Sequence record: LR745206.1
Length of the DNA stretch: 64,000 nucleotides
Direction: 5' to 3' (one strand)
The notes beneath the pieces were generated by a model. The model was given only the letters and a program-made list of their open reading frames with translations, did not search any database and had not been told where the DNA came from. Positions within the stretch are counted from its first letter, which is position 1. The number at the start of each line of letters is the position of its first letter. A program made the position numbers and the translations under genes. Shown here in pieces: positions 26,524 to 56,215 of the stretch.

Positions 26524-26586
26524 ATGAAGAATATAAGATTAAATGATGATAGATTTTTATTAACTAACTGCAAAGCAGATTGGTAA
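26524..26586 (+). CDS. Putative attenuator leader peptide (Asn/Asp) MKNIRLNDDRFLLTNCKADW
   Basis: 3 Asn + 3 Asp in 20 aa directly upstream of a terminator and AspRS. Confidence 0.7.
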   Translation: MKNIRLNDDRFLLTNCKADW

Positions 26587-26611
26587 TAGAAAGTTATTAT
26601 CTAAATCTTGA

Positions 26612-26642
26612 AACCCAGTTAGTAACTAACTGGGTTTTTTTT
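26612..26642 (+). terminator. Attenuator terminator before AspRS
   Basis: AACCCAGTTAG-TAA-CTAACTGGGTT followed by T-tract. Confidence 0.85.
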
Positions 26643-26669
26643 ATGCAAAAAATTAAAAAAATAGAAATT

Positions 26670-27944
26670 ATGAAACGAACAAATGTAAATGAATTAGGAA
26701 ACTTTATTAATGAGAGAGTATTGGTAAAGGGTTGGGTGTCTCAATTTAGAGAGCTCAAAAAAATGTCTTTCCTAATATTAAGAGAAAGAACAGGGTATTG
26801 TCAAATAATAATACCAAAAGAAATATCACAATCTATTTCACCAGAATCGGTTGTTGAAATTATAGGTATTGTGAAAAAAGAAGAGCAATCTAGATATGGT
26901 GGATATGAAATAGTAGCTGAGTCCATTAATGTTGTATCAAATGCTCAACTATTACCATTTCCTATCAATAGGGAAGAAGGTATACCACAATTTAATGTTT
27001 TGAATAATTATAGACCTTTGACTTTGAGAAAAGAAAAAGAAAGATGTATATTTAAAATACAATCTGAGATTATATGGGCATATCGTGAGTATTTAAGATC
27101 ACAAGGATTTACAGAGATACAGTCAACAAAATTATCATCTGCTGGATTAGAAGGTGGATCTGAAATGTTTGAAATAGAGTATTTTGGTGAGAAAATGTAT
27201 TTAACACAAAGTCCACAATTCTACAAACAAATGATGGTTGGTGTTTATGAGAGAGTATTTGAAGTTGGTAAAGTCTATCGAGCAGAGGGATCAAATAGCA
27301 ATAGACATTTAACAGAGTTTGTTGGATTTGAATTTGAAATGGGATTCATAGAATCTGTTGAGGAGGTTATGCAAATGGAAGAGAATGTATTTGAGTATAT
27401 TTTCAACCATCTAAAATCTTTTTGTGTAAAAGAATTAGAATATTTTGGTATTAATTTAGAATTCAATCCAATACCAAGAATAACGTATCAAGAATCATTA
27501 GAGATTATTAAAAATTCTGGATTAAACTATGAGAAGATAGGGTTAAATGCTGAAGCAGAAAAAATAATTGGTGAGTATGTCTTAGAACATATGAAATCTG
27601 AATTCGTTTTTATAACAAAATATCCTTTATCAGAAAGACCATTCTATGCAATGCCATCTATTGAAGAGGGATGTTCTGAAACATTTGAACTATTATATAA
27701 AGGTATTGAGGTAACATCTGGTGGTCAAAGAATACACAATTATGAAGAATTGGTTAAATCAATTGAATCAAAGGGTTTGAATCCTGAGAATTTTGAAAGT
27801 TATTTGATGGCTTTTAAATATGGTATGCCAACACATGGAGGTATGGGTATAGGTTTAGAAAGAATACTAAAACAGATGCTTAATTTGAATTCTGTTGAAG
27901 AAGCATCACTAATTCCACGAACAAAAGAAAAAAATATACATTAA
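26670..27944 (+). CDS. aspS: Aspartyl-tRNA synthetase, archaeal/eukaryote-like type (possibly non-discriminating)
   Basis: OB-fold N-terminus, LTQSPQFYKQ, YRAEGS..RHLTEF, EVTSGGQRIH, GMPTHGGMGIGLER; start ATG 26670. Confidence 0.88.
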   Translation: MKRTNVNELGNFINERVLVKGWVSQFRELKKMSFLILRERTGYCQIIIPKEISQSISPESVVEIIGIVKKEEQSRYGGYEIVAESINVVSNAQLLPFPINREEGIPQFNVLNNYRPLTLRKEKERCIFKIQSEIIWAYREYLRSQGFTEIQSTKLSSAGLEGGSEMFEIEYFGEKMYLTQSPQFYKQMMVGVYERVFEVGKVYRAEGSNSNRHLTEFVGFEFEMGFIESVEEVMQMEENVFEYIFNHLKSFCVKELEYFGINLEFNPIPRITYQESLEIIKNSGLNYEKIGLNAEAEKIIGEYVLEHMKSEFVFITKYPLSERPFYAMPSIEEGCSETFELLYKGIEVTSGGQRIHNYEELVKSIESKGLNPENFESYLMAFKYGMPTHGGMGIGLERILKQMLNLNSVEEASLIPRTKEKNIH

Positions 27945-28006
27945 TATTTGGGGGAACAAAACTTTTTATATATATTTGTATAAGATAAATAATAATAAGA
28001 AAAACA

Positions 28007-28054
28007 ATGATGTAGATTAATACATATTATAATTTTGTAGTGGTTCCTCCTTAA
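28007..28054 (+). CDS. Putative leader ORF MM*INTYYNFVVVPP with in-frame TAG
   Basis: ATG ATG TAG ATT AAT ... CCT CCT TAA after the TAnnTTTG promoter; 3' end lies in a 9-bp stem. Confidence 0.5.
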
Positions 28055-28120
28055 TGAGAGAATACTGATAAACCGACTAGCCAAAGATGCACTCGGTCAG
28101 TATTTAACTTGTAAGGAGGA
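28045..28120 (+). promoter_or_regulatory. Nested stem-loop leader RNA
   Basis: TCCTCCTTA/TAAGGAGGA, AATACTG/CAGTATT and ACCGA/TCGGT nested helices. Confidence 0.65.
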
Positions 28121-28154
28121 TTTATATTTTAAACAAAAAATTAACACAAAAATT

Positions 28155-28514
28155 ATGAACAATTAGATTAATGAAACAAAATTAATAGTTATCACAAGAA
28201 GTGATATCTCACCTGGATACCAAGCTGTCCAATCAACACACTCTATCGCAGATTTTGCATTTGAATTTCCCGATACTTTTACTAAGTGGAAAATGGAATC
28301 AAACTCTATTATCTGCCTTTCCGTAAAAAACGAATTTGAATTAGAAAGACTCTATGAAAAGTTCAAAGATATAACACCTTCTGTTATTTTCTATGAACCT
28401 GATGTGGATGAAAGGACATCTCTTTGCCTTTATGGAACTCCTGATATTAGAAAAAAGTTAAGAAGTCTTCCACTTCTATTAAAAAATAAAATCAACGAAA
28501 ATGAAACTGTTTAA
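28155..28514 (+). CDS. Pth2-like peptidyl-tRNA hydrolase family protein with in-frame TAG at codon 4
   Basis: MNN*INETKLIVITRSDISPGYQAVQSTHS...W...IICLSVKNE in one frame with track ORF 28293..28514; the Pth2-type N-terminal motif lies upstream of the track start. Confidence 0.7.
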
Positions 28515-29160
28515 GAAAAAAGAGGAAGATCCTCAAATAAAACCAATACAATTCTCTATTAATAATAGAGATTACATAGCTGAATATGATACGACCTTTA
28601 AGGTACAATCAGTAGCAGAAGATGTAAATGTTTATGGGTGGGTGTTGGAAACTAGATATAAATTTGATGGAAAATGGACACATTGGATATCATATTATAA
28701 TAATCGAATTTATCATAGTAGAGAATCAGCAGTTGATGCTTCTATGAAAATAAGATCTATGTATCGAGATAGTGGTGATGCTTGGAGAATATCACCAATA
28801 TACAAAATGAATGAACCACAATATAGAGATTATAAGATCAATAAAATTTTGGGTGATGATAAAAAACCAAACACATTTGAGATAAAAGGTTGGAGATTGA
28901 ATGAAAGATTTAAATACCATTCTACAAAAGATAAAGATTTTTATTATGAAAAGGGTACCGTATTTATTCAATTGGAAAATGGTAGTGTTATAATAAGTGG
29001 TACATCTATGGAAAGTCATAAATATATTCATTATAGAAAAAGATTTTTTGATGAGATATTACCAAATGCTGAAATCGAAGAAATAGAAATAACAGATGAA
29101 AAGTGGTTACACCCACATCTATTAAAAGAATTAAAAGTTAAACTAAAAATAAAAAACTAA
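28501..29160 (+). CDS. Hypothetical protein
   Basis: 219 aa ORF. Confidence 0.75.
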   Translation: MKLFKKKEEDPQIKPIQFSINNRDYIAEYDTTFKVQSVAEDVNVYGWVLETRYKFDGKWTHWISYYNNRIYHSRESAVDASMKIRSMYRDSGDAWRISPIYKMNEPQYRDYKINKILGDDKKPNTFEIKGWRLNERFKYHSTKDKDFYYEKGTVFIQLENGSVIISGTSMESHKYIHYRKRFFDEILPNAEIEEIEITDEKWLHPHLLKELKVKLKIKN

Positions 29161-29163
29161 ATT

Positions 29164-29754
29164 ATGAATACTTAGATTACATTTAAACAACTAATTAAAG
29201 ATATGATGAATTGTCAACAGACTAAAGATCAATCTGTTTTACAACATGGTATCTCTGTTAAAAATTACACATTTGATTTAATCAATCATTTAAAGTGTGA
29301 AACTCCATTGAAGTATGAATGGAAATTACCTGATTGGTTATATGAAAATAAAGAACTAATTATTTCAAATCTACCATCAGATAGAACTTTGAAGTATTAC
29401 ACAATCTTACATGATTGTGGGAAGCCTTATTGTCTAGAAATTGATAGTGATGGTAAAAGACATTTCCCAAATCATTCTGATGTATCTTGTGAAATATTTT
29501 GTGAAATATTTGATGATGAGATAGCTTCAAATTTAATTAAACATGATATGGATATCCATTTGTTAAAATCAGATGGTGTAGAGGAATTTTGCCAAAATCC
29601 ATATTCATTAACATTATTATTAGTAGGATTATCTGAAATACATTCCAATTCAAAAATGTTCGGTGGTCTTGATTCAACCTCTTTCAAGATCAAGTGGAAA
29701 TCAATAAATCAAAGAGGTAAACAAATTATTAAATTATTAACTAAAAAAAAATAA
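29164..29754 (+). CDS. HD-domain phosphohydrolase with in-frame TAG at codon 4
   Basis: MNT*ITFKQLIKDMMNCQQ..LQHG..ILHDCGKP; in frame with track ORF 29203..29754. Confidence 0.75.
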
Positions 29755-32154: not shown

Positions 32155-32265
32155 TCATATTGATGGTTGTGTGAGTTGCGTAGTGACAAGAACACAGGCT
32201 ATACAACATAGGTTCACAGTTCAAAGATTCAATAATCTACTTCTTAGAGCGACCTTTCCCACAAT
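32155..32265 (+). ncRNA. Possible small structured RNA
   Basis: Own TAnnTTTG box at 32145, no ORF, end-to-end pairing TTGTG/CACAA and GTTGC/GCGAC. Confidence 0.3.
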
Positions 32266-32379
32266 ATTTTATAAATAAATTAAAATAAATTAGGTAGATA
32301 TAAAACTTTTATCTATATTTGTATAAAATAATAACAAAAACGAAAAAAGGGACAATTCCTTTTTAATATATAAGAAATA

Positions 32380-32475
32380 ATGACAACAAATAGTACACAT
32401 AAGAATTTTAGTAAATCGCATAAATGGTTTAGCAACCAATCGTTCGGTACTGAAAGTGTATTGTCATTAAATTAA
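32380..32475 (+). CDS. Putative attenuator leader peptide (His/Phe/Trp) MTTNSTHKNFSKSHKWFSNQSFGTESVLSLN
   Basis: 2 His, 3 Phe, 1 Trp; followed by a terminator and His/Phe/Trp tRNAs. Confidence 0.75.
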   Translation: MTTNSTHKNFSKSHKWFSNQSFGTESVLSLN

Positions 32476-32508
32476 TGTAGAAGTTAAATTAATAAACAAC
32501 AATATTTC

Positions 32509-32538
32509 AATCCGAACTCAAAAGTTCGGATTTTTTTT
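32509..32538 (+). terminator. Attenuator terminator, His/Phe/Trp tRNA block
   Basis: AATCCGAAC-TCAAAA-GTTCGGATT plus T-tract. Confidence 0.85.
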
Positions 32539-32552
32539 GTTTAAAAATATAT

Positions 32553-32627
32553 GGTGTGTGAAGGGAAAATGGTTGACCCGTCACTCTGTGAAAGTGAAGA
32601 TAGCGGGATCGTTACCCGTCATACACC
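32553..32627 (+). tRNA. tRNA-His (GTG)
   Basis: TCACT-CT-GTG-AA-AGTGA; encoded G-1 and C73; T-loop ATCGTTA. Confidence 0.85.
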
Positions 32628-32634
32628 CAAATAA

Positions 32635-32707
32635 GGAACCTAAGCTAATCAGGTGAAAGCACTGGACTGAAAATCCAGGGAGCCCGGATCGTTACCGGGA
32701 GGTTCCA
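32635..32707 (+). tRNA. tRNA-Phe (GAA)
   Basis: CTGGA-CT-GAA-AA-TCCAG; acceptor GGAACCT/AGGTTCC. Confidence 0.88.
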
Positions 32708-32714
32708 CAAACAT

Positions 32715-32788
32715 GGTGAATGTAGCTCAATTGGGAGAGCGTCTGGTTGTGAACCAGAAGGTAGTCGGATCAAAACCGACCTTTCACA
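32715..32788 (+). tRNA. tRNA-His (GTG), atypical
   Basis: TCTGG-TT-GTG-AA-CCAGA; T-loop ATCAAAA, A at position 73. Confidence 0.75.
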
Positions 32789-32794
32789 CAAAAT

Positions 32795-32866
32795 GGAGGC
32801 TTAGCTGAGACGGTTTAGCGTTGGTGTGAAGTACCAAAGAGGTCGGTTCGATTCCGGCAGTCTCCA
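32795..32866 (+). tRNA. tRNA-Phe (GAA)
   Basis: TTGGT-GT-GAA-GT-ACCAA; canonical T arm. Confidence 0.8.
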
Positions 32867-32881
32867 CAAAATAACTAACAC

Positions 32882-32953
32882 GCGGATGAGCGTAGGTTTA
32901 GTCGGCAGGATTCCAACCCCTCGCCCGTTAGAGTTCGAATCTCTACATCCGCG
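32882..32953 (+). tRNA. Degenerate tRNA-like gene (CCA/Trp or TCC/Gly register)
   Basis: Perfect acceptor GCGGATG/CATCCGC and T arm TAGAG-TTCGAAT-CTCTA; D and anticodon stems poorly paired. Confidence 0.45.
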
Positions 32954-32959
32954 CAAATA

Positions 32960-33027
32960 ACAAGTAGTGACTAAGAGGGTTACTTCGATTTTAACGACAA
33001 ACAATACTCTCTTTATTTTTCTCTTGT
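32960..33027 (+). other. Hairpin element homologous to the flanks of the permuted tRNA-Cys
   Basis: Shares CAAG-TAGT...GAG...GTTACTTCGA.T...CGAC...AATAC..CTC with 59031-59158; ACAAG/CTTGT closing pair. Confidence 0.5.
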
Positions 33028-33032
33028 TAAAC

Positions 33033-33103
33033 ACGGGTATGGTGAAATGGTATCATTACGGTCTCCAAAACCGCAGTTCTGAGTTCGAATCTTGGTACCC
33101 GTG
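33033..33103 (+). tRNA. tRNA-Trp (CCA)
   Basis: ACGGT-CT-CCA-AA-ACCGC; G73. Confidence 0.88.
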
Positions 33104-33135
33104 CAAATTATTAAAAATTGAAAAAGGAAGAAATT

Positions 33136-33165
33136 ATGAAAACTAAATTAAAATATAAACGATAG
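33136..33165 (+). CDS. Putative leader peptide (Lys) MKTKLKYKR
   Basis: 4 AAA Lys codons in 9; same GAAGAAATTATGAAAACTA 5' context as the leader at 33630; followed by four tRNA-Lys. Confidence 0.7.
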   Translation: MKTKLKYKR

Positions 33166-33195
33166 GGTTAGTAACCAATTGAAAGTTACTAACCC
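33165..33195 (+). promoter_or_regulatory. 11-bp hairpin starting at the Lys leader stop codon
   Basis: GGGTTAGTAAC-CAATTGAAA-GTTACTAACCC; no long T-tract. Confidence 0.7.
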
Positions 33196-33208
33196 ATTTA
33201 GAAAAAAT

Positions 33209-33281
33209 GCGTTCGTAGCTCAATTGGTAGAGCTTCCGGCTTTTAACCGGAAGGTTGTGGGTTCGATTCCCTCCGGGCGTA
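33209..33281 (+). tRNA. tRNA-Lys (TTT)
   Basis: TCCGG-CT-TTT-AA-CCGGA. Confidence 0.88.
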
Positions 33282-33292
33282 CTAGTAAATAT

Positions 33293-33378
33293 CCGTCCGT
33301 GGGTGAATGGCTGAAACCACCAGACTTTTAATCTGACGAGAGAGATCTCCATTGTAGGTTCGAATCCTACCGGGCGGA
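33293..33378 (+). tRNA. tRNA-Lys (TTT), long variable arm
   Basis: CCAGA-CT-TTT-AA-TCTGA; extended variable region. Confidence 0.75.
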
Positions 33379-33382
33379 CAAG

Positions 33383-33465
33383 GCACCTGTCGCTTAGCGG
33401 CTATAGCAACTGGCTTTTAACCAGTCGAGTTTTCTCAATCGTGGGTTCGAGTCCCACCAGGTGCA
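33383..33465 (+). tRNA. tRNA-Lys (TTT), long variable arm
   Basis: ACTGG-CT-TTT-AA-CCAGT; variable CGAGTTTTCTCAATC. Confidence 0.8.
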
Positions 33466-33471
33466 CAAAAT

Positions 33472-33557
33472 GACTCCGTTCCCGTAGTTGGCCGAACGGT
33501 CCAGACTCTTAATCTGGCGACGAAAGTCCACCGTGGGTTCGAATCCCACCGGGGTCA
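33472..33557 (+). tRNA. tRNA-Lys (CTT), long variable arm
   Basis: CCAGA-CT-CTT-AA-TCTGG; variable GAC-GAAA-GTC hairpin. Confidence 0.8.
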
Positions 33558-33629
33558 CAAGAATAAAAGTTAAAAAATTAGGAATTGACAAAAACAAACA
33601 TTACATTTGTAATATATAAAGAAGAAATT

Positions 33630-33704
33630 ATGAAAACTATTAACAACACATCGAAAAGTTCTAGTCGCTCATCAAGTATGAGTGAGATTCGATTGTATTC
33701 GTAA
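33630..33704 (+). CDS. Putative attenuator leader peptide (Ser/Arg) MKTINNTSKSSSRSSSMSEIRLYS
   Basis: 9 Ser + 2 Arg in 24 aa; own TACATTTG promoter; terminator then Arg/Ser tRNAs. Confidence 0.82.
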   Translation: MKTINNTSKSSSRSSSMSEIRLYS

Positions 33705-33726
33705 TAGTCAAGTATAGATATTTATG

Positions 33727-33757
33727 AAACCTCGAATCTAACGATTTGAGGTTTTTT
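33727..33757 (+). terminator. Attenuator terminator, Ser/Arg tRNA block
   Basis: AAACCTCGAATC-TAAC-GATTTGAGGTTT plus T-tract. Confidence 0.85.
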
Positions 33758-33767
33758 GTTTTAAAAT

Positions 33768-33839
33768 GGTTCCATCGTTCAACGGATAGGACACTCGGCT
33801 ACGAACCGAGAAATTGGGGTTCGAATCCCTATGGAATCA
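33768..33839 (+). tRNA. tRNA-Arg (ACG)
   Basis: CTCGG-CT-ACG-AA-CCGAG. Confidence 0.9.
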
Positions 33840-33844
33840 CAAAT

Positions 33845-33931
33845 GGAAGAGTAATTAAGCTGGCGCTTGACCTAGTCTTGAAAACTAGTGGTACTGAAAG
33901 GTATGGGGATCGATACCTCACTCTTCCGCCA
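33845..33931 (+). tRNA. tRNA-Ser (TGA)
   Basis: CTAGT-CT-TGA-AA-ACTAG; long variable arm, G73, encoded CCA. Confidence 0.85.
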
Positions 33932-33935
33932 AATT

Positions 33936-34022
33936 GGAAAAATAAGAGCAGTTGGTCTAAGCTCGGCGGTTTTGAAAACCGTAGGCCCTAGTGGTGTGTG
34001 AGTTCGAGTCTCACTTTTTCCG
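33936..34022 (+). tRNA. tRNA-Ser (TGA)
   Basis: GCGGT-TT-TGA-AA-ACCGT; long variable arm, G73. Confidence 0.85.
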
Positions 34023-34031
34023 CAAAAATTT

Positions 34032-34118
34032 GGAGAGCAATCTAATCTGGTGATTAGGGCCGCCTGCTAAGCGTGTCGCACCTTCGGGTGTGGGGTTCAA
34101 TTCCTCTGTTCTCCGCCA
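34032..34118 (+). tRNA. tRNA-Ser (GCT)
   Basis: CGC-CT-GCT-AA-GCG; variable GCACC-TTCG-GGTGT; encoded CCA. Confidence 0.8.
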
Positions 34119-34121
34119 AAT

Positions 34122-34205
34122 GGAAGGCAATCTAACTTGGTAGTTAGCCACGCTTGGAAAGCGTCGGGCACCTTCGGGTGTGGGTTTCGATTACTCTGTC
34201 TTCCG
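34122..34205 (+). tRNA. tRNA-Ser (GGA)
   Basis: ACGC-TT-GGA-AA-GCGT; same variable arm as the preceding gene. Confidence 0.8.
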
Positions 34206-34210
34206 CAAAT

Positions 34211-34291
34211 GCCTCTGTATCGTCCTCGTCTTCGAAACGAGAGTAGCGTAACGGATAATGAAAAATGTAGGTTCGAATCCTACCAGGGGTA
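34211..34291 (+). tRNA. Rearranged tRNA-Arg (TCG)-like gene: no D arm before the anticodon, D-arm-like hairpin after it
   Basis: GCCTCTG/CAGGGGT acceptor, CTCGT-CT-TCG-AA-ACGAG, CGT-AACGGATA-ATG, GTAGG-TTCGAAT-CCTAC. Confidence 0.6.
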
Positions 34292-34295
34292 CAAA

Positions 34296-34598
34296 ATGAA
34301 TGAAATAATTATAGGAGATTGTCCGATTTGTGATCGTGAAATGTGGAGAGGTAGCTTTGTCGATAGGCATCACTTTTACCCTAAGTGTAAAGGTGGTAAA
34401 GAAACAGAGTATCTACATAAAGTGTGTCACCGAAAGATACATTCTGTTTTTACAGAAAATGAATTGGCAAAAGAATATAATAATGCTGAGATTGTTAAAT
34501 CTCATCCAGAAATAATTAAATTCATAAAATGGGTATCTAAGAAAGATCCTGATTTTTATGATAGTACAGTAACACATAATAGGAAAAGGAGAAGGTAA
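34296..34598 (+). CDS. HNH-family nuclease-like protein
   Basis: CPIC...DRHHFYPKCKGG...LHKVCHRKIH; start ATG 34296 (the track extension overlaps tRNAs). Confidence 0.8.
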   Translation: MNEIIIGDCPICDREMWRGSFVDRHHFYPKCKGGKETEYLHKVCHRKIHSVFTENELAKEYNNAEIVKSHPEIIKFIKWVSKKDPDFYDSTVTHNRKRRR

Positions 34599-34906
34599 TG
34601 GAAAGAGAAGAAATTTACAGAAGACATATAAGGTATGGTACATCGTCTGAGGGTACACTTATGTTGATGCAAAGTTTATTAACTGAAATATTGAGACCGG
34701 AGTATAGAAAAATTTGGGTTCAAGGTTCCTCAAGAGGTAGTCTATGTTTTACTATATTTGATAGAAACTCATATACAATGAGATTTTTCAACACTGGTGG
34801 ACTAAGACAATTCAGGGTGGATGCTCCATTGGAAGAAGAGATAGTTGCTATGGAAAGATTAATAGAGATATTCCGACAAGGTGTTCTATCTGAATTTATA
34901 GATTAG
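34598..34906 (+). CDS. Hypothetical protein
   Basis: 102 aa, coupled to the previous stop. Confidence 0.6.
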   Translation: MEREEIYRRHIRYGTSSEGTLMLMQSLLTEILRPEYRKIWVQGSSRGSLCFTIFDRNSYTMRFFNTGGLRQFRVDAPLEEEIVAMERLIEIFRQGVLSEFID

Positions 34907-35084
34907 GAGAGAGGATATGTGATATATAAGATATGAAGAAAGTATTTAAATTTATCACATATCCTTTAAGTAGATATATAAAAAATAGAATTAAATCTAG
35001 ATTAAATTGGTAATAATGAAAATTATTCCTATATTTGTAATTAATAATTAAAACATAAACGAAAAATATAATATATAAATAATA

Positions 35085-35129
35085 ATGAGAGCTTTACATA
35101 CATACAAAATTACGATTGACTTGGGTTAA
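35085..35129 (+). CDS. Putative attenuator leader peptide MRALHTYKITIDLG (His)
   Basis: Single His codon; 3' end complementary to the terminator 5' arm; upstream of HisRS operon. Confidence 0.55.
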   Translation: MRALHTYKITIDLG

Positions 35130-35154
35130 CCCAGCTGTATTTTATATGTATATA

Positions 35155-35185
35155 GCCCAGTCAATCTTTTGACTGGGTTTTTTTA
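35155..35185 (+). terminator. Attenuator terminator before HisRS operon
   Basis: GCCCAGTCAA-TCTTT-TTGACTGGGT plus T-tract. Confidence 0.85.
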
Positions 35186-35207
35186 TGCAAAAAAATAAAG
35201 TAAAGTT

Positions 35208-35411
35208 ATGAAAACAAAAGATGATAGCTGGTACGAGCAAAAAGTTGAAAGTATCAGAAAGAGGAAAAGAAAACTCCATCTTATCCAAGAGCCAAAGGTT
35301 AGAAAGAGAATTAAGGCGGATTTAAAACGTGAGCAAAGAGGGGCTAAAAGATCTTCTAAAAACTCATTAAAGAAATGGATGGAAAACGAAATAAATAAAT
35401 TAAACGATTAA
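35208..35411 (+). CDS. Small basic helical protein
   Basis: 67 aa Lys/Arg-rich ORF. Confidence 0.6.
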   Translation: MKTKDDSWYEQKVESIRKRKRKLHLIQEPKVRKRIKADLKREQRGAKRSSKNSLKKWMENEINKLND

Positions 35412-35424
35412 AAAAATTATAAAA

Positions 35425-36060
35425 ATGGAAATTAAAATTGATAGTACTTATAAAGGAACAAGAATCCTTTTTGCGGAAACAGCTAAGAGTAAACGTGTTT
35501 TACTAAATGATATGATTGAAATACTTGAATCTTATGGATATCAAGAAATAATGATACCAATCATACAAAAACAAGAAACTTTCGCTTCAAAGGTGGGTGA
35601 TGAAAATCAAAACATGATGTATAACTTTAAAGATAGAGGTAATCGTGATTTATGTTTATCACCAGAGTACACAGCAATTGTTCAACAATTAGCCTCTGAT
35701 AGAATGAAGTTTGATAAAGATGTTAAAATGTTCTACATAGGAGAATGTTTTAGAGGAGAAAATACACAAGCTGGAAGATGGAGACAATTCACACAATTTG
35801 GTGTTGAAGTCTTAAATCCATCTAAAGACTACTCTGATGAAATGATAGAAATTGCTACTAAACTAATTGAATTAGTTACAAAAAATTATGAATTAAACAC
35901 AGACGCAACAAGAGGTCTTGACTACTACAATGGTGGAAAGGGATTTGAAATTGCTTGTCCTGAGTTGGGAGCTGCTAAACAAATTTGTGGGGGAGGTTCT
36001 TATGAAGGAGGTATTGGTTTTGCCGTTGGTGTGGACAGATTACTATTATGCAACAGATAA
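35425..36060 (+). CDS. hisS: Miniature histidyl-tRNA synthetase (catalytic core only)
   Basis: YKGTR, LCLSPEYTA, FRGENTQAGRWRQFTQFGVE, RGLDYY, GGGSY, GFAVGVDR; ends with no anticodon-binding domain. Confidence 0.85.
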   Translation: MEIKIDSTYKGTRILFAETAKSKRVLLNDMIEILESYGYQEIMIPIIQKQETFASKVGDENQNMMYNFKDRGNRDLCLSPEYTAIVQQLASDRMKFDKDVKMFYIGECFRGENTQAGRWRQFTQFGVEVLNPSKDYSDEMIEIATKLIELVTKNYELNTDATRGLDYYNGGKGFEIACPELGAAKQICGGGSYEGGIGFAVGVDRLLLCNR

Positions 36061-36323
36061 GATATTTAAATTTTAATAAAATAGGTGATAGATTTGCATC
36101 AGTTGGTGATAATACCACTGATGTAAAAATAACATTTAAAACAGGAAATGAATTGAGTAATTTCATTAACAGCAATGAATCTATATTTAAGAATATGGAT
36201 TATAAATGTGACACCTCACTATTTAAAATAGTGAAGATTGAAAAAATAAAACACTTTTCTATAATAGCAAAGATAGAAAGAATAACTCTAAGAGAGTATA
36301 ACCTAGAAAGATTATTAACATGA
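36048..36323 (+). CDS. Hypothetical protein
   Basis: 91 aa; C-terminal REYNLERLL. Confidence 0.6.
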   Translation: MQQIRYLNFNKIGDRFASVGDNTTDVKITFKTGNELSNFINSNESIFKNMDYKCDTSLFKIVKIEKIKHFSIIAKIERITLREYNLERLLT

Positions 36324-37033
36324 AAACAAAACAAAGAATAAAAAATTTAAGAAGTATAGCTCCTGATTATCCGAGGATACCTCATTTTTCAAAAGCTATA
36401 TCAAATATGACTCACGATGATATATTAACTGAGTCGAATATACAATTCCCCTTATCTGGTTGGGTACAGGAGAAAGTTGATGGTGCTAATATGGGTATAT
36501 CCTGGACAAGTGGTCCACTTATTAGAAACAGAAATAATATTTTAAAGAAAGGATATATTGATACTGATACACCAGCTAAATTACAATTCAGGCCTGCTTG
36601 GAATTGGATACATGAACATGGACAAGATATTAGAAATATTTCTAAAGAGTTGATGTCTCCTGTGACAATTTATGGTGAGTGGATGTTAGCAAAACATTCA
36701 TTGGAATATGACAAATTAACTGATTGGTTTTTAGCTTATGATATTTATTTATCAGAAGAAAGAAGATTTTTGGCTCCTGATATTTTTGAGGAATTAATGT
36801 CTAAGACTAATATCAAATATATCAAACCAAAGAAGATAATATTTAATAATTTAGATGAGGTTGTTAGATATTCTGAGAAAAATTCAGATTTTAGAAATGG
36901 TAAACAAGAGGGTATCGTTATTAAAATATCTGATGGTAGTTCAGTAACAGATTCTTATAAAGTAGTTAATAAACACTTTATAAGAAGAGAAGATTTTAAT
37001 AAGGAATTAATAAAAAATAAGATTAAGAAATAA
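36320..37033 (+). CDS. ATP-dependent RNA ligase family protein
   Basis: Motif I QEKVDGAN, YGEW, AYDI, EGIVIK. Confidence 0.8.
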   Translation: MKTKQRIKNLRSIAPDYPRIPHFSKAISNMTHDDILTESNIQFPLSGWVQEKVDGANMGISWTSGPLIRNRNNILKKGYIDTDTPAKLQFRPAWNWIHEHGQDIRNISKELMSPVTIYGEWMLAKHSLEYDKLTDWFLAYDIYLSEERRFLAPDIFEELMSKTNIKYIKPKKIIFNNLDEVVRYSEKNSDFRNGKQEGIVIKISDGSSVTDSYKVVNKHFIRREDFNKELIKNKIKK

Positions 37034-47400: not shown

Positions 47401-47637
47401 TTGATTTTCTGATAATACTATATCATTTGGACCAGAAATATTATCAGTGCTTAAAACCGCTGATAATGATGGAGTTACTCCTATACCACCGGTTGGACCT
47501 CCCCCAATTTCAGTAATAACACCGAATATATCTTTCTGTTTTAGTATTCCATCTAAATCATAAGCAACAAAATATCCACTTGATGGAGTACCTGCGCTTA
47601 ACATATCTAAAGTATTACCAAATAATATTGAACCCAT
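44410..47637 (-). CDS. Putative tail fibre protein paralogous to 40852..44361
   Basis: 1075 aa; shared LTISGTATYVNTE-x-LYV-x-DNIITLNATY module, same repeats, terminal HNLNT. Confidence 0.7.
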   Translation of the reverse strand: MGSILFGNTLDMLSAGTPSSGYFVAYDLDGILKQKDIFGVITEIGGGPTGGIGVTPSLSAVLSTDNISGPNDIVLSENQVLTSATGSAFLSLDDFGDTDIFVLASDSTAQIGFRGYSNGSVVQMFNNQSGGFAYIDSESIRVSGQLLLELGISGGYNIQALQNSTQSTSNGSLSRSGLYLNTSNGSFDSGVINSVIIGGLNLSATQSNTVYLGNNVNVNNVYTLPNYDGTVGQSIITDGSGNLSWGAPSGAGLSDVLFIDNNSGVNSIVMGTATSILSSNGEGRIDLDYGSTSSISLSTDNGSFLKSYLILDNSDIIIDASGSLNIGASTGSVVIDNLQGLVYGFDYSSTFVNNSLVSKLYVDNLVSSGSGNGTASQVAFFTGTSSITSSSIFRYDGNVIDIGGDYGLGGGGRVIFNINNGDGFLVPIASEISYGARISASYQLGLGASSSTGIVVQSTADPTGDSIGIFINSGGGTNNYSLRLNDGSQAQGKFLKSVTSIGEANWSFISESDISDFGSYLPLAGGTVSGDLTVLGDLTISGTATYVNTENLYVRDNIITLNATYSGSPILDSGIEVNRGTGTYSKLLWNETLDYWQIGLSGSESTIITEAGIGLTKSGNYLSIDNTGVTSSTYGSSNEAVVFTVNSQGQLTDAYTQSISITSNQISDFNTSVDSVIFDNSNFIDGSTVDFTVLGATAVSAEVTLGSLTSSRFDIGNSASPGLLLGYTASGQFFWYDPLSTTGDITDVSAGLGLTGGGSSGAVTLDADLTIDGGLTFSGSGTIEVLVDNSTIQIINGELVSVASAGDITGVTAGAGLSGGGASGYVTLDVNLGIDGGLTFSGNDIIVDTGYGGIYGGSGYLITDTTVNQTDKFLLFTGVRGIVTTELNIDPNNSIIETKVSSTTGDNSKIESMVDHIYMLWEDGATFDSANVTVDQFGSQLYWYDGVGGSQSSILTDTNGILITDTLNLRGAGYDDNYKVNGISYFGDRWIPDKAYVDSIPSTLGLSKKVTDIRSFTSSVTETILHNLNTEDLLIQTYDSTGIQIIPGSVQITGTGSVDIQLSRTLSSVKTVIIG

Positions 47638-49225: not shown

Positions 49226-50296
49226 TTATGAGTTATATTTGAAATTGTGATTTTCTTCAATATTAAGTAGTGTTTGATATATTAACTTAATAACATTCTT
49301 AACATCCTCTTTGTGAACTGTTTCACAGGTTGTGTGCATATATTTCAAAGGTAATGATATAAGTGCTGATGGTACTCCTCCATTAGAGAATGCAAAGGCA
49401 TCAGTATCAGTCCCAGTAGATCTTGATGAAGCTGATAATTGATAAGGAATTTTCTTCTTATCACCCGTATCTAAAATCAATTTTCTTAATTTGTTATGAA
49501 CAGCAGGTGCTCTTGTTACAACACCACCATTTCCAGCAATATGTTCACCTTGTTTACTTGCGGTATAACAAGGTGAAGAAGTTTCGTGACAGACATCTGT
49601 TATGATTGCTACATTTGGTTTTATAGTCTGAGCAATCATTTCAGCTCCTCTTAATCCAATTTCCTCTTGAACTGAATTAACAATGTATAGTTTAAATGGT
49701 AATTCTTTACCTTTTTCTTTTAATTTTCTAGCAACTTCTGCTATCATAACACCTCCAATTCTATTATCAAGTGCTCTACCAGTATAGTAATCATCACCAA
49801 GTTTCATAAAGTTATCTTTGAATGTGATTACTGTTCCAACTTTTATACCAAGTTTATCAACATCTTCTTTAGAAGAAGCACCAACATCAATAAAGATTGA
49901 ATCTAAATCGGCTGATGTTTTTCTATCATGTATATGAATTGCTGGGTGACCGAATATACCATCAATTGGCCCATTTTCACCCCAGAGTGTAACTCTCATA
50001 GACGGTGCGATAGTTGTATCTGACCCACCATTACGGATTACTTTGATATATCCTTTAGAGTCTATATAATTGACAAACCAAGATATTTCATCCGCGTGAG
50101 CTTCAATGACAACTTTGAAATCAGAATCCATATTACCCATTATTCCATAGGCGGTTCCGTAATTATCAATTTCTACTTCATTAACAAATTTTGAGATGTA
50201 GTCCATCCAGACCTTTTGACCACCTAATTCATATTCGAATCCGGTTGGTGAGTTAGAGTTTAAGTAATTCTCTAAGAATTTTTCGTTTATTTTCAT
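49226..50296 (-). CDS. M42 family aminopeptidase
   Basis: EAHADEI, GRALDNR, QEEIGLRGA, DVCHE, GTDTDA, KYMHT. Confidence 0.92.
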   Translation of the reverse strand: MKINEKFLENYLNSNSPTGFEYELGGQKVWMDYISKFVNEVEIDNYGTAYGIMGNMDSDFKVVIEAHADEISWFVNYIDSKGYIKVIRNGGSDTTIAPSMRVTLWGENGPIDGIFGHPAIHIHDRKTSADLDSIFIDVGASSKEDVDKLGIKVGTVITFKDNFMKLGDDYYTGRALDNRIGGVMIAEVARKLKEKGKELPFKLYIVNSVQEEIGLRGAEMIAQTIKPNVAIITDVCHETSSPCYTASKQGEHIAGNGGVVTRAPAVHNKLRKLILDTGDKKKIPYQLSASSRSTGTDTDAFAFSNGGVPSALISLPLKYMHTTCETVHKEDVKNVIKLIYQTLLNIEENHNFKYNS

Positions 50297-54366: not shown

Positions 54367-54824
54367 AACATTTAAAAACATATAAAATATTTGAATCTAA
54401 TTTAGATGATACGTATTATGATGTAGAATCTATCTTTTACTCTTTGAGAGATTATGGATATGATATTTATGTTGATAAGGAAGAAATACAATTGGATAAT
54501 TATGTTGAAGAAACAATTGCTTTTCATATAGGTAAGAATAATGATAATTCATCATTAGCTTCTACATCTGGTGATCCTTTTGTGATAGAAGGTGAATCCG
54601 AGGATATTAATGAATTAAAAGATTGTATATTAAGAGTTAAAGATTTTTTAAGTGATTGGGTTTGTTATATGGAGATAAGATATAATAAAGAAAGGTTTAT
54701 ATCTATTAATAAAGATGTGAAAATAGAAAATGATTCTTTTTTTGAAATTAGAGATAATAAACTAGTTGATTTCCCTATTATAAGATTAAAAGTATTTTTT
54801 ATAAGAAAAATTAAAAATATTTAA
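54363..54824 (+). CDS. Hypothetical protein (MKHLKTYKIFES motif)
   Basis: 153 aa; first 12 aa identical to ORF 60202..60651. Confidence 0.7.
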   Translation: MKHLKTYKIFESNLDDTYYDVESIFYSLRDYGYDIYVDKEEIQLDNYVEETIAFHIGKNNDNSSLASTSGDPFVIEGESEDINELKDCILRVKDFLSDWVCYMEIRYNKERFISINKDVKIENDSFFEIRDNKLVDFPIIRLKVFFIRKIKNI

Positions 54825-54869
54825 AAAGGGAGACAACCTTTTTAATATATACACGTATAATAAAGACAT

Positions 54870-54941
54870 CGCGGGGTAGAGCAGTGGCAGCTCGCAAGGC
54901 TCATAACCTTGAGGTCGTTGGTTCGAATCCAGCCCCCGCTA
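54870..54941 (+). tRNA. tRNA-fMet (CAT), initiator type
   Basis: CGCGGGG 5' end with unpaired C1, CAAGG-CT-CAT-AA-CCTTG; no leader or terminator upstream. Confidence 0.85.
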
Positions 54942-55028
54942 CTAAAAAATATTAAAATAAATTAGGTAGATTAGAAAAAACTACTTATATTTGTAAAAGA
55001 ATTAATAAACAAGATAATAAATAAACAA

Positions 55029-55115
55029 ATGAACACAATTACTAACATAGCGTCTTACGAATCTTATTATGAAGAGGGTAACCTAGTCAGACGAAATAAC
55101 TATGTCGTAATGTAA
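55029..55115 (+). CDS. Putative attenuator leader peptide (Tyr/Glu) MNTITNIASYESYYEEGNLVRRNNYVVM
   Basis: YESYYEE core (4 Tyr, 3 Glu in total); terminator then Tyr/Glu tRNAs. Confidence 0.82.
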   Translation: MNTITNIASYESYYEEGNLVRRNNYVVM

Positions 55116-55139
55116 GTAATTATATAAACGAATATTTAT

Positions 55140-55173
55140 ACCCAGTCTGACAAATGTTAGACTGGGTTTTTTT
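55140..55173 (+). terminator. Attenuator terminator, Tyr/Glu tRNA block
   Basis: ACCCAGTCTGAC-AAAT-GTTAGACTGGGT plus T-tract. Confidence 0.85.
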
Positions 55174-55187
55174 ATGTCAAAAAATTC

Positions 55188-55255
55188 GGGATGAATTATG
55201 GTGATAGCCGGGTCTGTAAAACCCTAGCAGGTGAGTTCGAGTCTCACACATCCCA
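55188..55255 (+). tRNA. tRNA-Tyr (GTA), atypical short form
   Basis: GGGT-CT-GTA-AA-ACCC; truncated D arm, short variable loop. Confidence 0.65.
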
Positions 55256-55266
55256 CTAAAACAAAT

Positions 55267-55338
55267 GGTCCTATCGTCTAAAGGTTAGGATAACAGACTT
55301 TCAATCTGTTGATACGGGTTCGAGCCCCGTTAGGACTA
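55267..55338 (+). tRNA. tRNA-Glu (TTC)
   Basis: ACAGA-CT-TTC-AA-TCTGT. Confidence 0.88.
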
Positions 55339-55343
55339 CAAAT

Positions 55344-55415
55344 GCTCTATTCGTCTAGTGGCAAGGACATCACCCTCTCAAGGTGAAGACGCGGGTTCGA
55401 CTCCCGTATAGAGTA
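55344..55415 (+). tRNA. tRNA-Glu (CTC)
   Basis: TCACC-CT-CTC-AA-GGTGA. Confidence 0.88.
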
Positions 55416-55426
55416 CAAAATTAAAT

Positions 55427-55498
55427 GCTCCGTTCGACAAGCGGTTAAGTCGTTGCCCTTTCAAGGCAAAGTCACGGGTTCGAATCCCGTACGGAGTA
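55427..55498 (+). tRNA. tRNA-Glu (TTC)
   Basis: TTGCC-CT-TTC-AA-GGCAA. Confidence 0.88.
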
Positions 55499-55523
55499 CA
55501 AACAGACATCAACGTAATGTCTG

Positions 55524-55647
55524 GGTGATGTAGAGCAATTGGTAGCTCATCTGCTAGTTAAATGATGGAATAATCATAATCCTGAAGCTATTATAAAATA
55601 GGCGACACGGTTGGTTCTTGGTGTAGGTTCGAGTCCTATCATCACTA
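55524..55647 (+). ncRNA. tRNA-like RNA with a large insertion replacing the anticodon arm
   Basis: Acceptor GGTGATG/CATCACT, D arm GAGC-AATTGGTA-GCTC, T arm GTAGG-TTCGAGT-CCTAT; about 70 nt insert with small hairpins. Confidence 0.6.
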
Positions 55648-55653
55648 ATACCT

Positions 55654-55736
55654 GGGATGTTATACCGTAGGGGTAGCGGGACAGACTGTAAATCTGTTAT
55701 CTTCGGATTCGGGTGGTTCGACTCCATCACGTCCCA
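55654..55736 (+). tRNA. tRNA-Tyr (GTA)
   Basis: ACAGA-CT-GTA-AA-TCTGT; long variable arm. Confidence 0.85.
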
Positions 55737-55745
55737 CAAAAATAT

Positions 55746-55817
55746 GGTCCATTCGTCTAATGGTTAGGACGCTAGGTTTTCAACCTAGAAATACGGGTTC
55801 GATCCCCGTATGGACTA
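55746..55817 (+). tRNA. tRNA-Glu (TTC)
   Basis: CTAGG-TT-TTC-AA-CCTAG. Confidence 0.88.
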
Positions 55818-55822
55818 CAAAT

Positions 55823-55906
55823 GGGGATATAGAGCGTAATTGGTAGCGTCCCGGGCTGTAAACTCGGTGTCTTTTGATCTTGTAGGTTCGAGTCCTGCTA
55901 GCCCCA
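55823..55906 (+). tRNA. tRNA-Tyr (GTA)
   Basis: CCGGG-CT-GTA-AA-CTCGG; long variable region. Confidence 0.82.
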
Positions 55907-56080
55907 CAAAAAGAAATAATATAATATATTTGGTTTATTTGGTTTATTGAAATATTATATTTATATTTGTAAAAGAATCGTAATCCCAAGTAACCCCTTG
56001 GTCGATTTTTTAACAAATTAAAAAAGATTAAAAGGGAAGGTAAAACTTTTTATATATACATACATATAATAGGAACGAAA

Positions 56081-56164
56081 ATGAAAAATTTAAATAACAT
56101 ATCAATAGCAGTAATCGGGAACGGCGCGGGAGCGATACGTGAGTGGCTGAGTTATGGTATTTAA
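56081..56164 (+). CDS. Putative attenuator leader peptide (Ile/Gly/Ala) MKNLNNISIAVIGNGAGAIREWLSYGI
   Basis: 5 Ile (3 ATA), 4 Gly, 3 Ala; terminator then Ile/Gly/Ala tRNAs, GlyRS and AlaRS. Confidence 0.82.
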   Translation: MKNLNNISIAVIGNGAGAIREWLSYGI

Positions 56165-56183
56165 TTAAATTAAAATATTTCAA

Positions 56184-56215
56184 AAACCCAGTCACGAAAA
56201 TGACTGGGTTTTTTT
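56184..56215 (+). terminator. Attenuator terminator, Ile/Gly/Ala block
   Basis: AAACCCAGTCA-CGAAAA-TGACTGGGTTT plus T-tract. Confidence 0.85.

Follow-up and report, generated by a model that had tools for sequence, protein, structure and literature searches.

The analysed window is a stretch of 64,000 nucleotides from LR745206.1, the 635-kb genome of an uncultured "Mahaphage", a giant phage of Bacteroidota. In this window seven short ATG ORFs, here termed leaders L1 to L7, are present on the + strand together with tRNA gene blocks and genes related to tRNA charging. Six of these ORFs are followed 17-33 nt later by hairpins of 10-13 bp plus a T-tract, which sit directly before a tRNA block, an AspRS gene or a tRNA-repair-type operon. 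These six elements are the top hits of an independent terminator scan, in which 12 terminators were found against 3.6 and 2.3 expected in shuffled sequences. The seventh ORF, L3, is followed by a strong hairpin without a T-tract. The seven leaders fold with z-scores from -3.3 to -8.1.

The leader L1 (26524-26586; MKNIRLNDDRFLLTNCKADW) contains Asp codons at positions 8, 9 and 19, and its antiterminator strand (about 26564-26584) overlaps the stop codon. It is followed by an intrinsic terminator with a 13-bp stem plus T8 (26610-26646; z -8.1) and by a gene for a non-discriminating aspartyl-tRNA synthetase (26670-27944; NF003483, 473.8 bits against a cut-off of 353). The leader L2 (32380-32475; MTTNSTHKNFSKSHKWFSNQSFGTESVLSLN) encodes two His, three Phe and one Trp, carries the antiterminator strand GTTCGG at 32442-32447 and has the ortholog MRTINKHKHFSKLNKWFSNHRFEAKAFC in the related genome LR756502. 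Its terminator (32509-32540) precedes a tRNA block encoding His, Phe, His, Phe, Trp-like (32882-32954) and Trp (32554-33104). Only 32 nt after this tRNA-Trp and without a promoter of its own lies L3 (33136-33165; MKTKLKYKR), which contains four AAA codons, has the ortholog MKTKRKYKR in LR756502 and precedes a tRNA-Lys block with three ttt and one ctt anticodons (33209-33558). The hairpin abutting the L3 stop codon (33165-33195; -15.8 kcal/mol, z -5.4) is conserved in position but not in sequence in LR756502, and while its role is unresolved, it may be occluded directly by a stalled ribosome. The leader L4 (33630-33704; MKTINNTSKSSSRSSSMSEIRLYS) contains nine Ser and two Arg codons and an antiterminator strand at 33686-33700, and both an ortholog and three-way covariation were observed in LR756502. 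Its terminator (33726-33762) precedes a block (33768-34291) of tRNA-Arg(acg), four Ser-type tRNAs (33845-33927, 33936-34023, 34031-34115 and 34122-34204) and an atypical, Arg(tcg)-like tRNA (34211-34291), the anticodon of which was read by eye and for which the homologous Arg(tcg) is called in LR756502. Several of these tRNAs were missed by ARAGORN and were recovered by the Rfam scan and by reading the anticodons by eye.

The leader L5 (35085-35129; MRALHTYKITIDLG) has an antiterminator strand at 35116-35127 and a terminator at 35154-35186. Its specificity is unclear, and there is a single conserved His codon; the ortholog is MKTLHTYKNVIDWM. The operon behind it (35208-37909) encodes a basic ORF of 67 aa, a HisRS-like core fragment (35425-36060), small ORFs and two RNA ligases (36320-37033 and 37259-37909). 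The leader L6 (55029-55115; MNTITNIASYESYYEEGNLVRRNNYVVM), for which an ortholog was found, contains a Y-E-S-Y-Y-E-E run and the antiterminator strand GTCAGAC at 55086-55092. Its terminator (55140-55175) is followed by a block (55190-55907) with a Tyr-like tRNA (about 55190-55258, read by eye), three tRNA-Glu, a tRNA with an insert (55524-55647), Tyr, Glu and Tyr. The leader L7 (56081-56164; MKNLNNISIAVIGNGAGAIREWLSYGI) contains Ile, Gly and Ala codons (I-S-I-A-V-I-G-N-G-A-G-A-I) and an antiterminator strand at 56144-56153, and its terminator (56182-56220) precedes a probable operon (56228-59250) of tRNA-Ile(tat), Gly(tcc), CAT, Gly(tcc), an ORF, a GlyRS-like gene (57172-57912), an AlaRS-core-like gene (58058-58804), tRNA-Gly(gcc) and tRNA-Ala(tgc), with no strong + strand terminator in between. 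Notably, an initiator-like tRNA-Met (54870-54942; CGCGGGG..., C1-A72), which elongation cannot sense, has a promoter-like box upstream but neither a leader ORF nor a terminator.

The amino acid composition of the leaders matches the downstream content better than expected by chance. The true pairing of leaders and tRNA blocks scores best of all 40,320 permutations in LR745206 and again in LR756502, and 0 of 100,000 sets of random short ORFs reach the observed score, while the leaders of the aminoacyl-tRNA synthetase (aaRS) genes score best of 5,040 permutations. However, L1 (Asp, P=0.18) and L5 (His, P=0.18) are not individually significant by composition. The enrichment exists only in the ORF frame, with a summed z of 98.4 against 5.2 and 0.6 in the other two frames, and 74 of 78 matching codons can be decoded by the downstream anticodons, such as the ATA codons before tRNA-Ile(tat). 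Moreover, all 7 terminator-like hairpins that lie within 150 nt upstream of a tRNA have one short ORF ending 17-33 nt before them, and 51 of 59 tRNA genes sit in leader-headed blocks covering 19 amino acid identities. TAnnTTTG, the promoter motif of the Bacteroidota type, lies within 80 nt upstream of 9 of 14 leaders, where chance gives 0.062 per window (p=2e-8).

The 3' part of the leaders is complementary to the 5' arm of the terminator, and this duplex averages -9.8 kcal/mol against -4.1 kcal/mol at 178 other terminators (p=5e-8). Antiterminator and terminator covary, as own pairs average -9.17 kcal/mol against -6.56 kcal/mol for swapped pairs over 32 leaders (p<1e-5). The sensing codons lie 12-35 nt upstream of the antiterminator strand, which overlaps or abuts the stop codon in most leaders. 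In folding analyses the terminator is in the minimum-energy fold of 14 of 14 leaders, and with a ribosome placed on the sensing codons the 5' arm is sequestered. However, the antiterminator helices are short (6-10 bp) and much weaker than the terminators, so that the switch must be kinetic, and a few relatives have weak ones, for example of -3.2 and -5.0 kcal/mol. Furthermore, in L2, L6, L8 (the leader listing seven amino acids described below) and L10 the antiterminator strand lies 14-27 nt before the stop codon and would not be covered in the simple model by a ribosome parked at the stop, so that termination in the replete state would need a moving ribosome or refolding.

The arrangement extends well beyond the window. 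A blind scan of the rest of the genome revealed MTTTQQIQQQQINQTD before three tRNA-Gln, a P/D/Q leader before Pro/Asp tRNAs, an N/L/T/V/I/M/R leader before a block of exactly those tRNAs, and V-, I-, L-, N- and F-rich leaders before ValRS-like, IleRS, LeuRS-like, AsnRS and PheS-like genes. Orthologs are present in LR756502, and the DD pair of L1 is conserved in LR756502 and in IMG/VR relatives. Where tRNA blocks are arranged differently the leaders are re-spelled, as seen for Tyr+Gln in LR756504, in the IMG/VR loci L019, L024 (Asp/Cys/Glu/Ala with 'ADCADE', in a distant contig) and L035, and for 'QRLHLQELEQP' before Pro, Glu, Gln, His, Leu, Leu, Arg in the cultured Cellulophaga phage phi4:1. 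Whole-peptide enrichment is modest for some relatives such as L024, in which only the ADCADE run stands out. In 16 Gln leaders, all variation inside the Q-run is an exchange of CAA and CAG. Of 101 viral-contig hits to a pattern of a Q-run plus a terminator 24 are followed by tRNAs, all of which are tRNA-Gln, while this is the case for none of 120 cellular-genome hits (Fisher p=1.3e-9).

These data are best explained by ribosome-mediated (leader-peptide) transcription attenuation of the trp/his/pheST type, applied to tRNA gene blocks and aaRS genes of a phage, for which we found no earlier description for tRNA genes. We hold this reading with good confidence, although translation of the leaders, termination at the T-tracts and the direction and cause of the response are inferred from sequence in the absence of transcript, ribosome-profiling or reporter data, and it is unknown whether host or phage RNA polymerase transcribes these units and whether transcription and translation are coupled during infection. 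In the proposed sequence of events, a leader RNA is started from a promoter of the Bacteroidota type or from a box with a conserved ATATATA motif, and a ribosome translates the leader ORF of 9-38 codons, which holds a cluster of codons for exactly the amino acids whose tRNAs or whose synthetase are encoded downstream. If these codons are read quickly, the ribosome runs to the stop codon and covers on its way the segment that could pair with the terminator 5' arm, or this segment is captured by an upstream partner as is possible in L1, L7 and the leader L13, so that the terminator hairpin forms and RNA polymerase stops at the T-tract before the tRNA genes. If any of these codons is read slowly, which could result from scarce, uncharged, damaged or under-modified tRNA, the ribosome stalls 12-35 nt upstream of the segment, which then pairs with the terminator 5' arm, prevents formation of the terminator and allows transcription of the tRNA block or synthetase gene. 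More tRNA or synthetase would restore decoding and close the loop.

The original prediction of amino-acid-matched leader-peptide attenuators is thereby supported, since every sequence-level prediction that could be tested held, including predictions outside the window, but three adjustments are needed. The Lys leader lacks a canonical terminator. L5 has no clear amino acid specificity and precedes a 67-aa ORF and then a HisRS-like fragment rather than a full aaRS gene. Finally, the leader before AspRS, proposed to be enriched in Asn and Asp, should be assigned to Asp only, as Asn is not conserved in relatives. The suggested trigger, i.e., starvation or host anticodon nucleases of the PrrC or PARIS type, is conceivable but not supported by any evidence here. 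As making more tRNA does not relieve true amino acid starvation, the adaptive logic for the tRNA genes depends on the untested premise that tRNA, not amino acid, is limiting.

Alternative explanations appear unlikely to differing degrees. The short ORFs might not be translated, the hairpins being constitutive leaky terminators, insulators, ends of small RNAs or attenuators governed by a protein or small RNA, and the amino acid match being accidental. Bacteroidota lack clear Shine-Dalgarno signals, so that initiation cannot be judged from sequence, and similar CCCAGT...ACTGGG terminators recur in the genome. However, the permutation results in two genomes, the restriction of the signal to the ATG frame, the re-spelling of leaders before re-sorted blocks in distant phages, the purely synonymous variation of the Q-runs and the exclusive occurrence of tRNA-Gln behind the 24 Q-run hits with a downstream tRNA make this very improbable. 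Even less likely are T-box-like or other direct tRNA-binding riboswitches, which would share the logic that a shortage of charged tRNA turns on aaRS genes, since no T-box or other cis-regulatory family was hit at the gathering threshold or at E<=1, the leaders are only about 100-180 nt long with most of this length being the ORF, and the signal resides in codons of one reading frame.

It is also unlikely, though somewhat less so, that translated leaders sense the same codons but act on processing or stability of the tRNA precursor, for example on access of RNase E, RNase III or RNase P, or through Rho-dependent polarity. In line with this view L3 and its ortholog have a conserved hairpin without a T-tract, and several leaders (L3, the leader L11 and many IMG/VR Gln leaders) lie inside tRNA transcripts directly after a tRNA 3' end, where processing is going on anyway. 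Yet nearly all of the 33 leaders collected from the six named phages, with the exceptions of L3 and its ortholog, carry canonical hairpin-plus-T-tract terminators whose 5' arms are complementary to the leader 3' part with covariation, a feature specific to termination and antitermination switches, and Rho-dependent polarity would give the opposite sign to the one implied by the geometry. Similarly doubtful is that the attenuators sense general translation capacity or ordinary amino acid starvation of the host, as in biosynthetic operons, with the tRNA genes as merely co-opted targets. Classical attenuators respond to charging levels set by amino acid supply, and in designs without a 1:2 hairpin lack of any translation also gives readthrough, but the sorting of blocks by amino acid and the match of leader codons to the specific downstream anticodons, including the rare ATA/tRNA-Ile(tat) case, are unnecessary for a general sensor. 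Even so, the sequence cannot separate amino acid limitation from tRNA limitation.

The tRNA gene arrays of the Proteobacteria phages examined, T5-like, KVP40 and XacN1, are likewise large clusters of tRNA genes interspersed with small ORFs, but when scanned with the same pipeline they gave 0, 1 (unmatched) and 0 arrangements of short ORF, terminator and tRNA, and their tRNAs are not sorted into amino acid regulons. T-box riboswitches of Firmicutes share the regulon logic that shortage of a specific charged tRNA induces genes restoring it, such as aaRS genes, but they bind tRNA directly and need no ribosome, whereas here the signal is codons in a translated frame and no T-box features or hits were found. 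With the trp, his, leu, thr and ilv operon attenuators of Proteobacteria the phage elements have in common that sensing codons lie upstream of the antiterminator strand and that the terminator hairpin carries a T-tract, and L1, L7 and L13 also have an upstream 1:2 hairpin, so that untranslated RNA terminates. However, the targets are tRNA genes instead of biosynthetic enzymes, the leaders often list several amino acids, up to seven in this genome (L8) and nine in phage phi4:1, mirroring a mixed tRNA block, many lack region 1, some are internal to a tRNA transcript, and no member of the Rfam leader families matched. The phage leaders for AspRS, AsnRS, IleRS, ValRS-like, LeuRS-like and PheS-like genes follow what is probably the plan of the Escherichia coli pheST attenuator, in which a short leader ORF (pheM) rich in the cognate amino acid, followed by an intrinsic terminator with an alternative antiterminator, would control phenylalanyl-tRNA synthetase. 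There is no sequence relationship and no Rfam hit, and here, in a phage, the same device is used for at least six synthetase genes in one genome and, above all, for tRNA genes.

The window is identical to positions 310,001-374,000 of LR745206.1, an unannotated 634,780-bp genome of an uncultured phage, and it was compared with the rest of this record and with parts of its relatives LR756502.1 (642 kb) and LR756504.1 (636 kb), which belong to the same set. According to the paper that reported genomes of this size, all five genomes longer than 634 kb belong to the Mahaphage clade and are predicted to replicate in Bacteroidetes, and up to 67 tRNAs and 15 tRNA synthetases occur per huge-phage genome, while leaders or attenuation are not mentioned (PMC7162821). 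All seven short ATG ORFs of the original prediction (leaders L1 to L7, in order along the window) are present, and orthologous ORFs with the frame kept occur in LR756502 and in IMG/VR contigs. Six of them are followed, 17-33 nt after the stop codon, by perfect 10-13-bp hairpins and a T-tract, and an independent terminator scan ranks these six at the top of their regions, with 12 sites found against 3.6±1.8 and 2.3±1.5 in shuffled sequences. The exception is the Lys leader L3, which together with its ortholog carries a conserved hairpin without a T-tract right after the stop codon; a ribosome stalled on the last Lys codons would cover the 5' arm of this hairpin, so that direct occlusion is possible, although this is conjecture. 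All seven leader RNAs fold much better than shuffled sequences (z -3.3 to -8.1), with the terminator in the minimum-energy fold.

The tRNA content agrees with the original prediction of blocks sorted by amino acid once the tRNAs missed by ARAGORN are added, namely a second Trp-like tRNA, three further Ser-type tRNAs and an Arg(tcg)-like tRNA behind the S/R leader L4, and Tyr-like tRNAs in the Y/E block behind L6, whereby some anticodons were read by eye. Four atypical tRNAs at 33845-34291 are missed by default ARAGORN, of which three are long-variable-arm Ser-type tRNAs that hit the tRNA-Sec model near its threshold, with the anticodons tga, gct and gga as read by eye, while the fourth (34211-34291) is oddly built, with anticodon tcg. 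Moreover, a tRNA at 55524-55647 in the Tyr/Glu block (Rfam, 40.9 bits) is about 124 nt long and carries a large insertion or intron; the relaxed ARAGORN call (Ser act with an intron) is doubtful. The gene behind L1 is a non-discriminating AspRS. The I/G/A leader L7 heads not only tRNA-Ile and tRNA-Gly genes but also a GlyRS-like gene, an AlaRS-core-like gene, tRNA-Gly(gcc) and tRNA-Ala, with no strong terminator in between, which explains the Ala codons. The leader at 35085 (L5) precedes a 67-aa basic ORF, a HisRS-like fragment and two RNA ligases. Many of the phage synthetase-like genes are strongly truncated and score below the family cut-offs: ValRS-like, 443 aa (segment L002, 34378-35709, minus strand), LeuRS-like, 422 aa (segment L009, 31831-33099), HisRS-like, 211 aa (window 35425-36060), GlyRS-like, 246 aa (57172-57912), and AlaRS-core, 248 aa (58058-58804). 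Elsewhere in the window, at 7982-15160 and 38506-47637, five very large ORFs (1331, 1059, 762, 1169 and 1075 aa) have no Pfam match, and nearby are an NAD-dependent DNA ligase (15659-17533) and an M42 aminopeptidase (49226-50296).

The correspondence between leaders and downstream genes exceeds chance. For the eight tRNA-block leaders of LR745206 the true leader-to-block assignment has the highest enrichment score of all 40,320 assignments, the same holds for the eight leaders of LR756502, and no set of length-matched random short ORFs out of 100,000 came close. For seven synthetase leaders the true assignment is the best of 5,040. The enrichment is confined to the ORF frame, with a summed z of 98.4 against 5.2 and 0.6 in the other frames, and 74 of 78 matching codons can be read by the anticodons encoded downstream, including ATA codons before the unusual tRNA-Ile(tat). 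Genome-wide, all seven terminator-like hairpins within 150 nt upstream of a tRNA have exactly one short ORF in the right place, and 51 of 59 tRNA genes, covering every amino acid except Cys, sit in leader-headed blocks. However, not every leader is individually significant by composition. L5 contains one conserved His codon at the usual sensing distance, which cannot be called a match (P=0.18), and L1 is supported by conservation of its Asp-Asp pair rather than by composition; Asn sensing by L1, which was part of the original prediction, was rejected as a conserved feature because the orthologs keep only the Asp codons.

A blind scan of the whole genome for a short ORF, a terminator and a gene in succession returned further leaders beyond the original prediction: MTTTQQIQQQQINQTD before three tRNA-Gln, MKTINVNIAPVNPQPQDQDPMRKANYVFMIS before Pro and Asp tRNAs, MTTMNLNMTMNLTLNVVNITLCNIR... 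before Asn, Arg, Leu, Val, Ile, Thr and Met tRNAs, MKTINLNNLVVVNVSV before a ValRS-like gene, MNFNTIIIIRYSIPWSIPIG before IleRS, MINNNVNILLLPLT before a LeuRS-like gene, MKTMTINNRNRLTDII before AsnRS, and MNTNTTFNFFFSHKMV before a 'PheS-related mystery ligase'. The latter (SrmL; NF051887, 423 bits) is encoded on the minus strand at LR745206.1 613,818-614,897 (segment L013, 44818-45897) behind the Phe-rich leader plus a terminator, which suggests that the function of the enzyme is tied to Phe-tRNA supply. The scanning procedure also gave false positives: MFLLAKTKLG before an 898-aa secreted protein in LR756502 is an ordinary gene-end terminator with a chance ORF, and so are several short ORFs that have no downstream gene. 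In relatives the leaders are conserved as ORFs, and they change when the tRNA blocks change. LR756504 has a Tyr+Gln block behind MKTKKQQYKQYQPQYK..., a distant 482-kb IMG/VR contig has Asp, Cys, Glu and Ala tRNAs behind a leader containing ADCADE, and another contig has Leu, Arg, Ile and Glu tRNAs behind ...SLRQLSLEQLIEE.... A scan for IleRS relatives in IMG/VR found nothing. Furthermore, a search for a simple pattern consisting of a Gln-codon run, a 58-88-nt gap and then GGGTTTTTT hit 101 stretches in IMG/VR, of which 24 have a tRNA within 300 nt downstream; every one is tRNA-Gln, with at least 13 distinct leader peptides, while none of 120 hits in bacterial and archaeal genomes is followed by tRNA-Gln (Fisher p=1.3e-9). 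The tRNA arrays of a T5-like coliphage, Vibrio phage KVP40 and Xanthomonas phage XacN1, scanned as controls, show no such architecture.

Notably, the same design is present in a cultured phage. Cellulophaga phage phi4:1 (NC_021788) is a 146-kb isolate with a host, and its tRNA array is divided into three units: MKIQRLHLQELEQPIISGGTGV plus a terminator before Pro, Glu, Gln, His, Leu, Leu and Arg; the annotated hypothetical protein gp075 (...TKTGITVIDKTKGARAYLGDTVIG) plus a terminator before Ala, Lys, Ile, Gly, Met, Asp, Thr, Val, Arg and Met; and MKTNYCTYNNSNWSFSYDTG... plus a terminator before Tyr, Ser, Asn, Trp and Phe. The true assignment is clearly the best of the six possible. The gp075 ORF (NC_021788.1 87,989-88,108; segment L025, 7990-8109), annotated with a TTG start, is probably a leader peptide and may start at the internal GTG. 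In the first phi4:1 leader the promoter motif lies only about 4 nt before the ATG, which suggests a nearly leaderless mRNA. Most leaders in all the phages examined begin with M-K/T/N/R-T/N, i.e., ATGAAAAC or ATGACAAC, which points to a shared start context or a common origin of the leader cassettes.

The 3' part of each leader is complementary to the 5' arm of its terminator, with a mean duplex energy of -9.8 kcal/mol for 12 attenuators against -4.1 for 178 other terminator-like hairpins of the genome (p=5e-8). Over 32 leaders from six phages, each leader pairs better with its own terminator than with others (-9.17 against -6.56, p<1e-5), one example being attcga/tcgaat in the window against gttcga/tcgaac in LR756502. 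Column-wise covariation on a MAFFT alignment of 10 Gln leaders was abandoned, as the antiterminator pair (AGATTGA with TCAATCT) is almost invariant there and the 3' arms are out of register, and the within-family own-versus-swapped test is weak for the same reason (p=0.03), so that we relied on the cross-family test instead. The clusters of matching codons lie 12-35 nt upstream of the antiterminator strand, which overlaps or abuts the stop codon in most leaders. In constrained folds with a ribosome on the sensing codons, the nascent RNA sequesters 7-12 nt of the terminator 5' arm, whereas the complete RNA folds into the terminator in 14 of 14 cases. L1, L7 and L13, one of the further leaders, also have an upstream hairpin that captures the antiterminator strand when the RNA is not translated, which is the classic four-segment design. 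However, in L2 (the His/Phe/Trp leader), L6 and the further leaders L8 and L10, a ribosome resting at the stop codon would not cover the antiterminator strand in the simple model, so timing must matter.

A sigma-70 promoter scan was uninformative, with 54 sites found against 51 expected, and the Bacteroidota-type motif TAnnTTTG was used instead; it lies within 80 nt upstream of 9 of 14 leaders (p=2e-8). An ATATATA box sits 12-19 nt before most leader start codons. In addition, a conserved dyad plus box, AAAAAGGGA-N6-CTTTTT-AATATATA, lies at 32342-32372 upstream of L2, at 56030-56058 upstream of L7, at about 14665-14695 of segment L009 upstream of L8 and at 54823-54851 upstream of the initiator-like tRNA-Met; it may be a phage-specific promoter, and before L2 and L8 it follows a host-type TAnnTTTG promoter. 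Between the Tyr/Glu block and the I/G/A leader, at 55960-56010, a TAnnTTTG promoter-like motif is followed by a small hairpin plus T-tract (55986-56001) with no ORF. Some leaders, i.e., Lys L3 (region 33105-33136), Gln L11 (region of about 34605-34638 in segment L009) and several IMG/VR Gln leaders (loci L044, L050, L059 and L090), start within about 30-40 nt of the 3' end of an upstream tRNA, and those checked (L11 and the IMG/VR ones) show no promoter motif. This implies serial attenuators, and translation initiating inside a tRNA precursor transcript.

Taken together, this is the anatomy of ribosome-mediated attenuation, and the implied sign is that slow decoding of the listed codons gives readthrough into the tRNA genes. 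The interpretation in the original prediction is supported as far as sequence analysis can go, although nothing here shows translation, termination or regulation directly. A T-box riboswitch is not supported as an alternative, since neither RF00230 nor any other cis-regulatory family was hit at the gathering threshold, or at E<=1 over 32200-35300. The same scans returned only tRNA-clan hits and chance small-RNA hits far below their gathering scores, and hence no match to the curated Rfam leader families (His, Trp, Leu, Thr and similar leaders). As the sequence cannot say whether the limiting factor is amino acid, charging, tRNA abundance or tRNA damage, the link to anticodon nucleases drawn in the original prediction remains speculation, and the tRNA-repair-type ligases under L5 are a suggestive neighbor and no more.

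A further-reaching, tentative reading is that phages of Bacteroidota run a genome-wide sensor of decoding rate, with one unit per amino acid or small group of amino acids, which in LR745206 would cover 19 of 20 amino acids. Each phage tRNA set, and the matching synthetase, would be made on demand when the corresponding codons are read slowly. This would explain why the tRNA genes are sorted into amino-acid blocks, and it would also act as an automatic replacement system when host tRNAs are depleted, shut off or cut by anticodon-nuclease defenses. RNA-ligase genes of the tRNA-repair type sit under a sister attenuator (L5). Why phages carry tRNA genes, and how these are regulated, has been debated for decades, and proposed reasons include codon compensation and escape from tRNA-cleaving defenses. 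Here, the genome itself carries a readable statement of what each tRNA block responds to, because the leader spells out the amino acids of the downstream tRNAs. If the mechanism holds, phage tRNA supply is feedback-controlled, one amino acid or group at a time, tRNA gene order within arrays has a regulatory explanation, and leader peptides can be used to predict the specificity of odd tRNAs and enzymes such as the 'PheS-related mystery ligase'.

In the literature searched, which did not cover most subscription journals, no description of leader-peptide control of tRNA genes or of phage tRNA arrays was found. In comparison with known systems, the device works like the trp/his attenuators, and for the synthetase genes it appears to work like the E. 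coli pheST attenuator. It shows the four sequence-level features of this class, namely a short leader ORF conserved as an ORF, regulatory codons cognate to the regulated product, an intrinsic terminator between the leader ORF and the regulated genes (in six of seven cases in the window), and a mutually exclusive antiterminator that uses the terminator 5' arm and is placed so that ribosome position decides which structure forms. By the Rfam scans, it is not a T-box, and it is not a member of any Rfam leader family. What is new is the target, i.e., tRNA gene blocks, so that textbook leader-peptide attenuation would be applied to non-coding RNA genes, the setting in phages, which would place the mechanism in a virus, the multi-amino-acid leaders that mirror mixed tRNA blocks, the leaders nested inside tRNA transcripts, and the scale within one genome.
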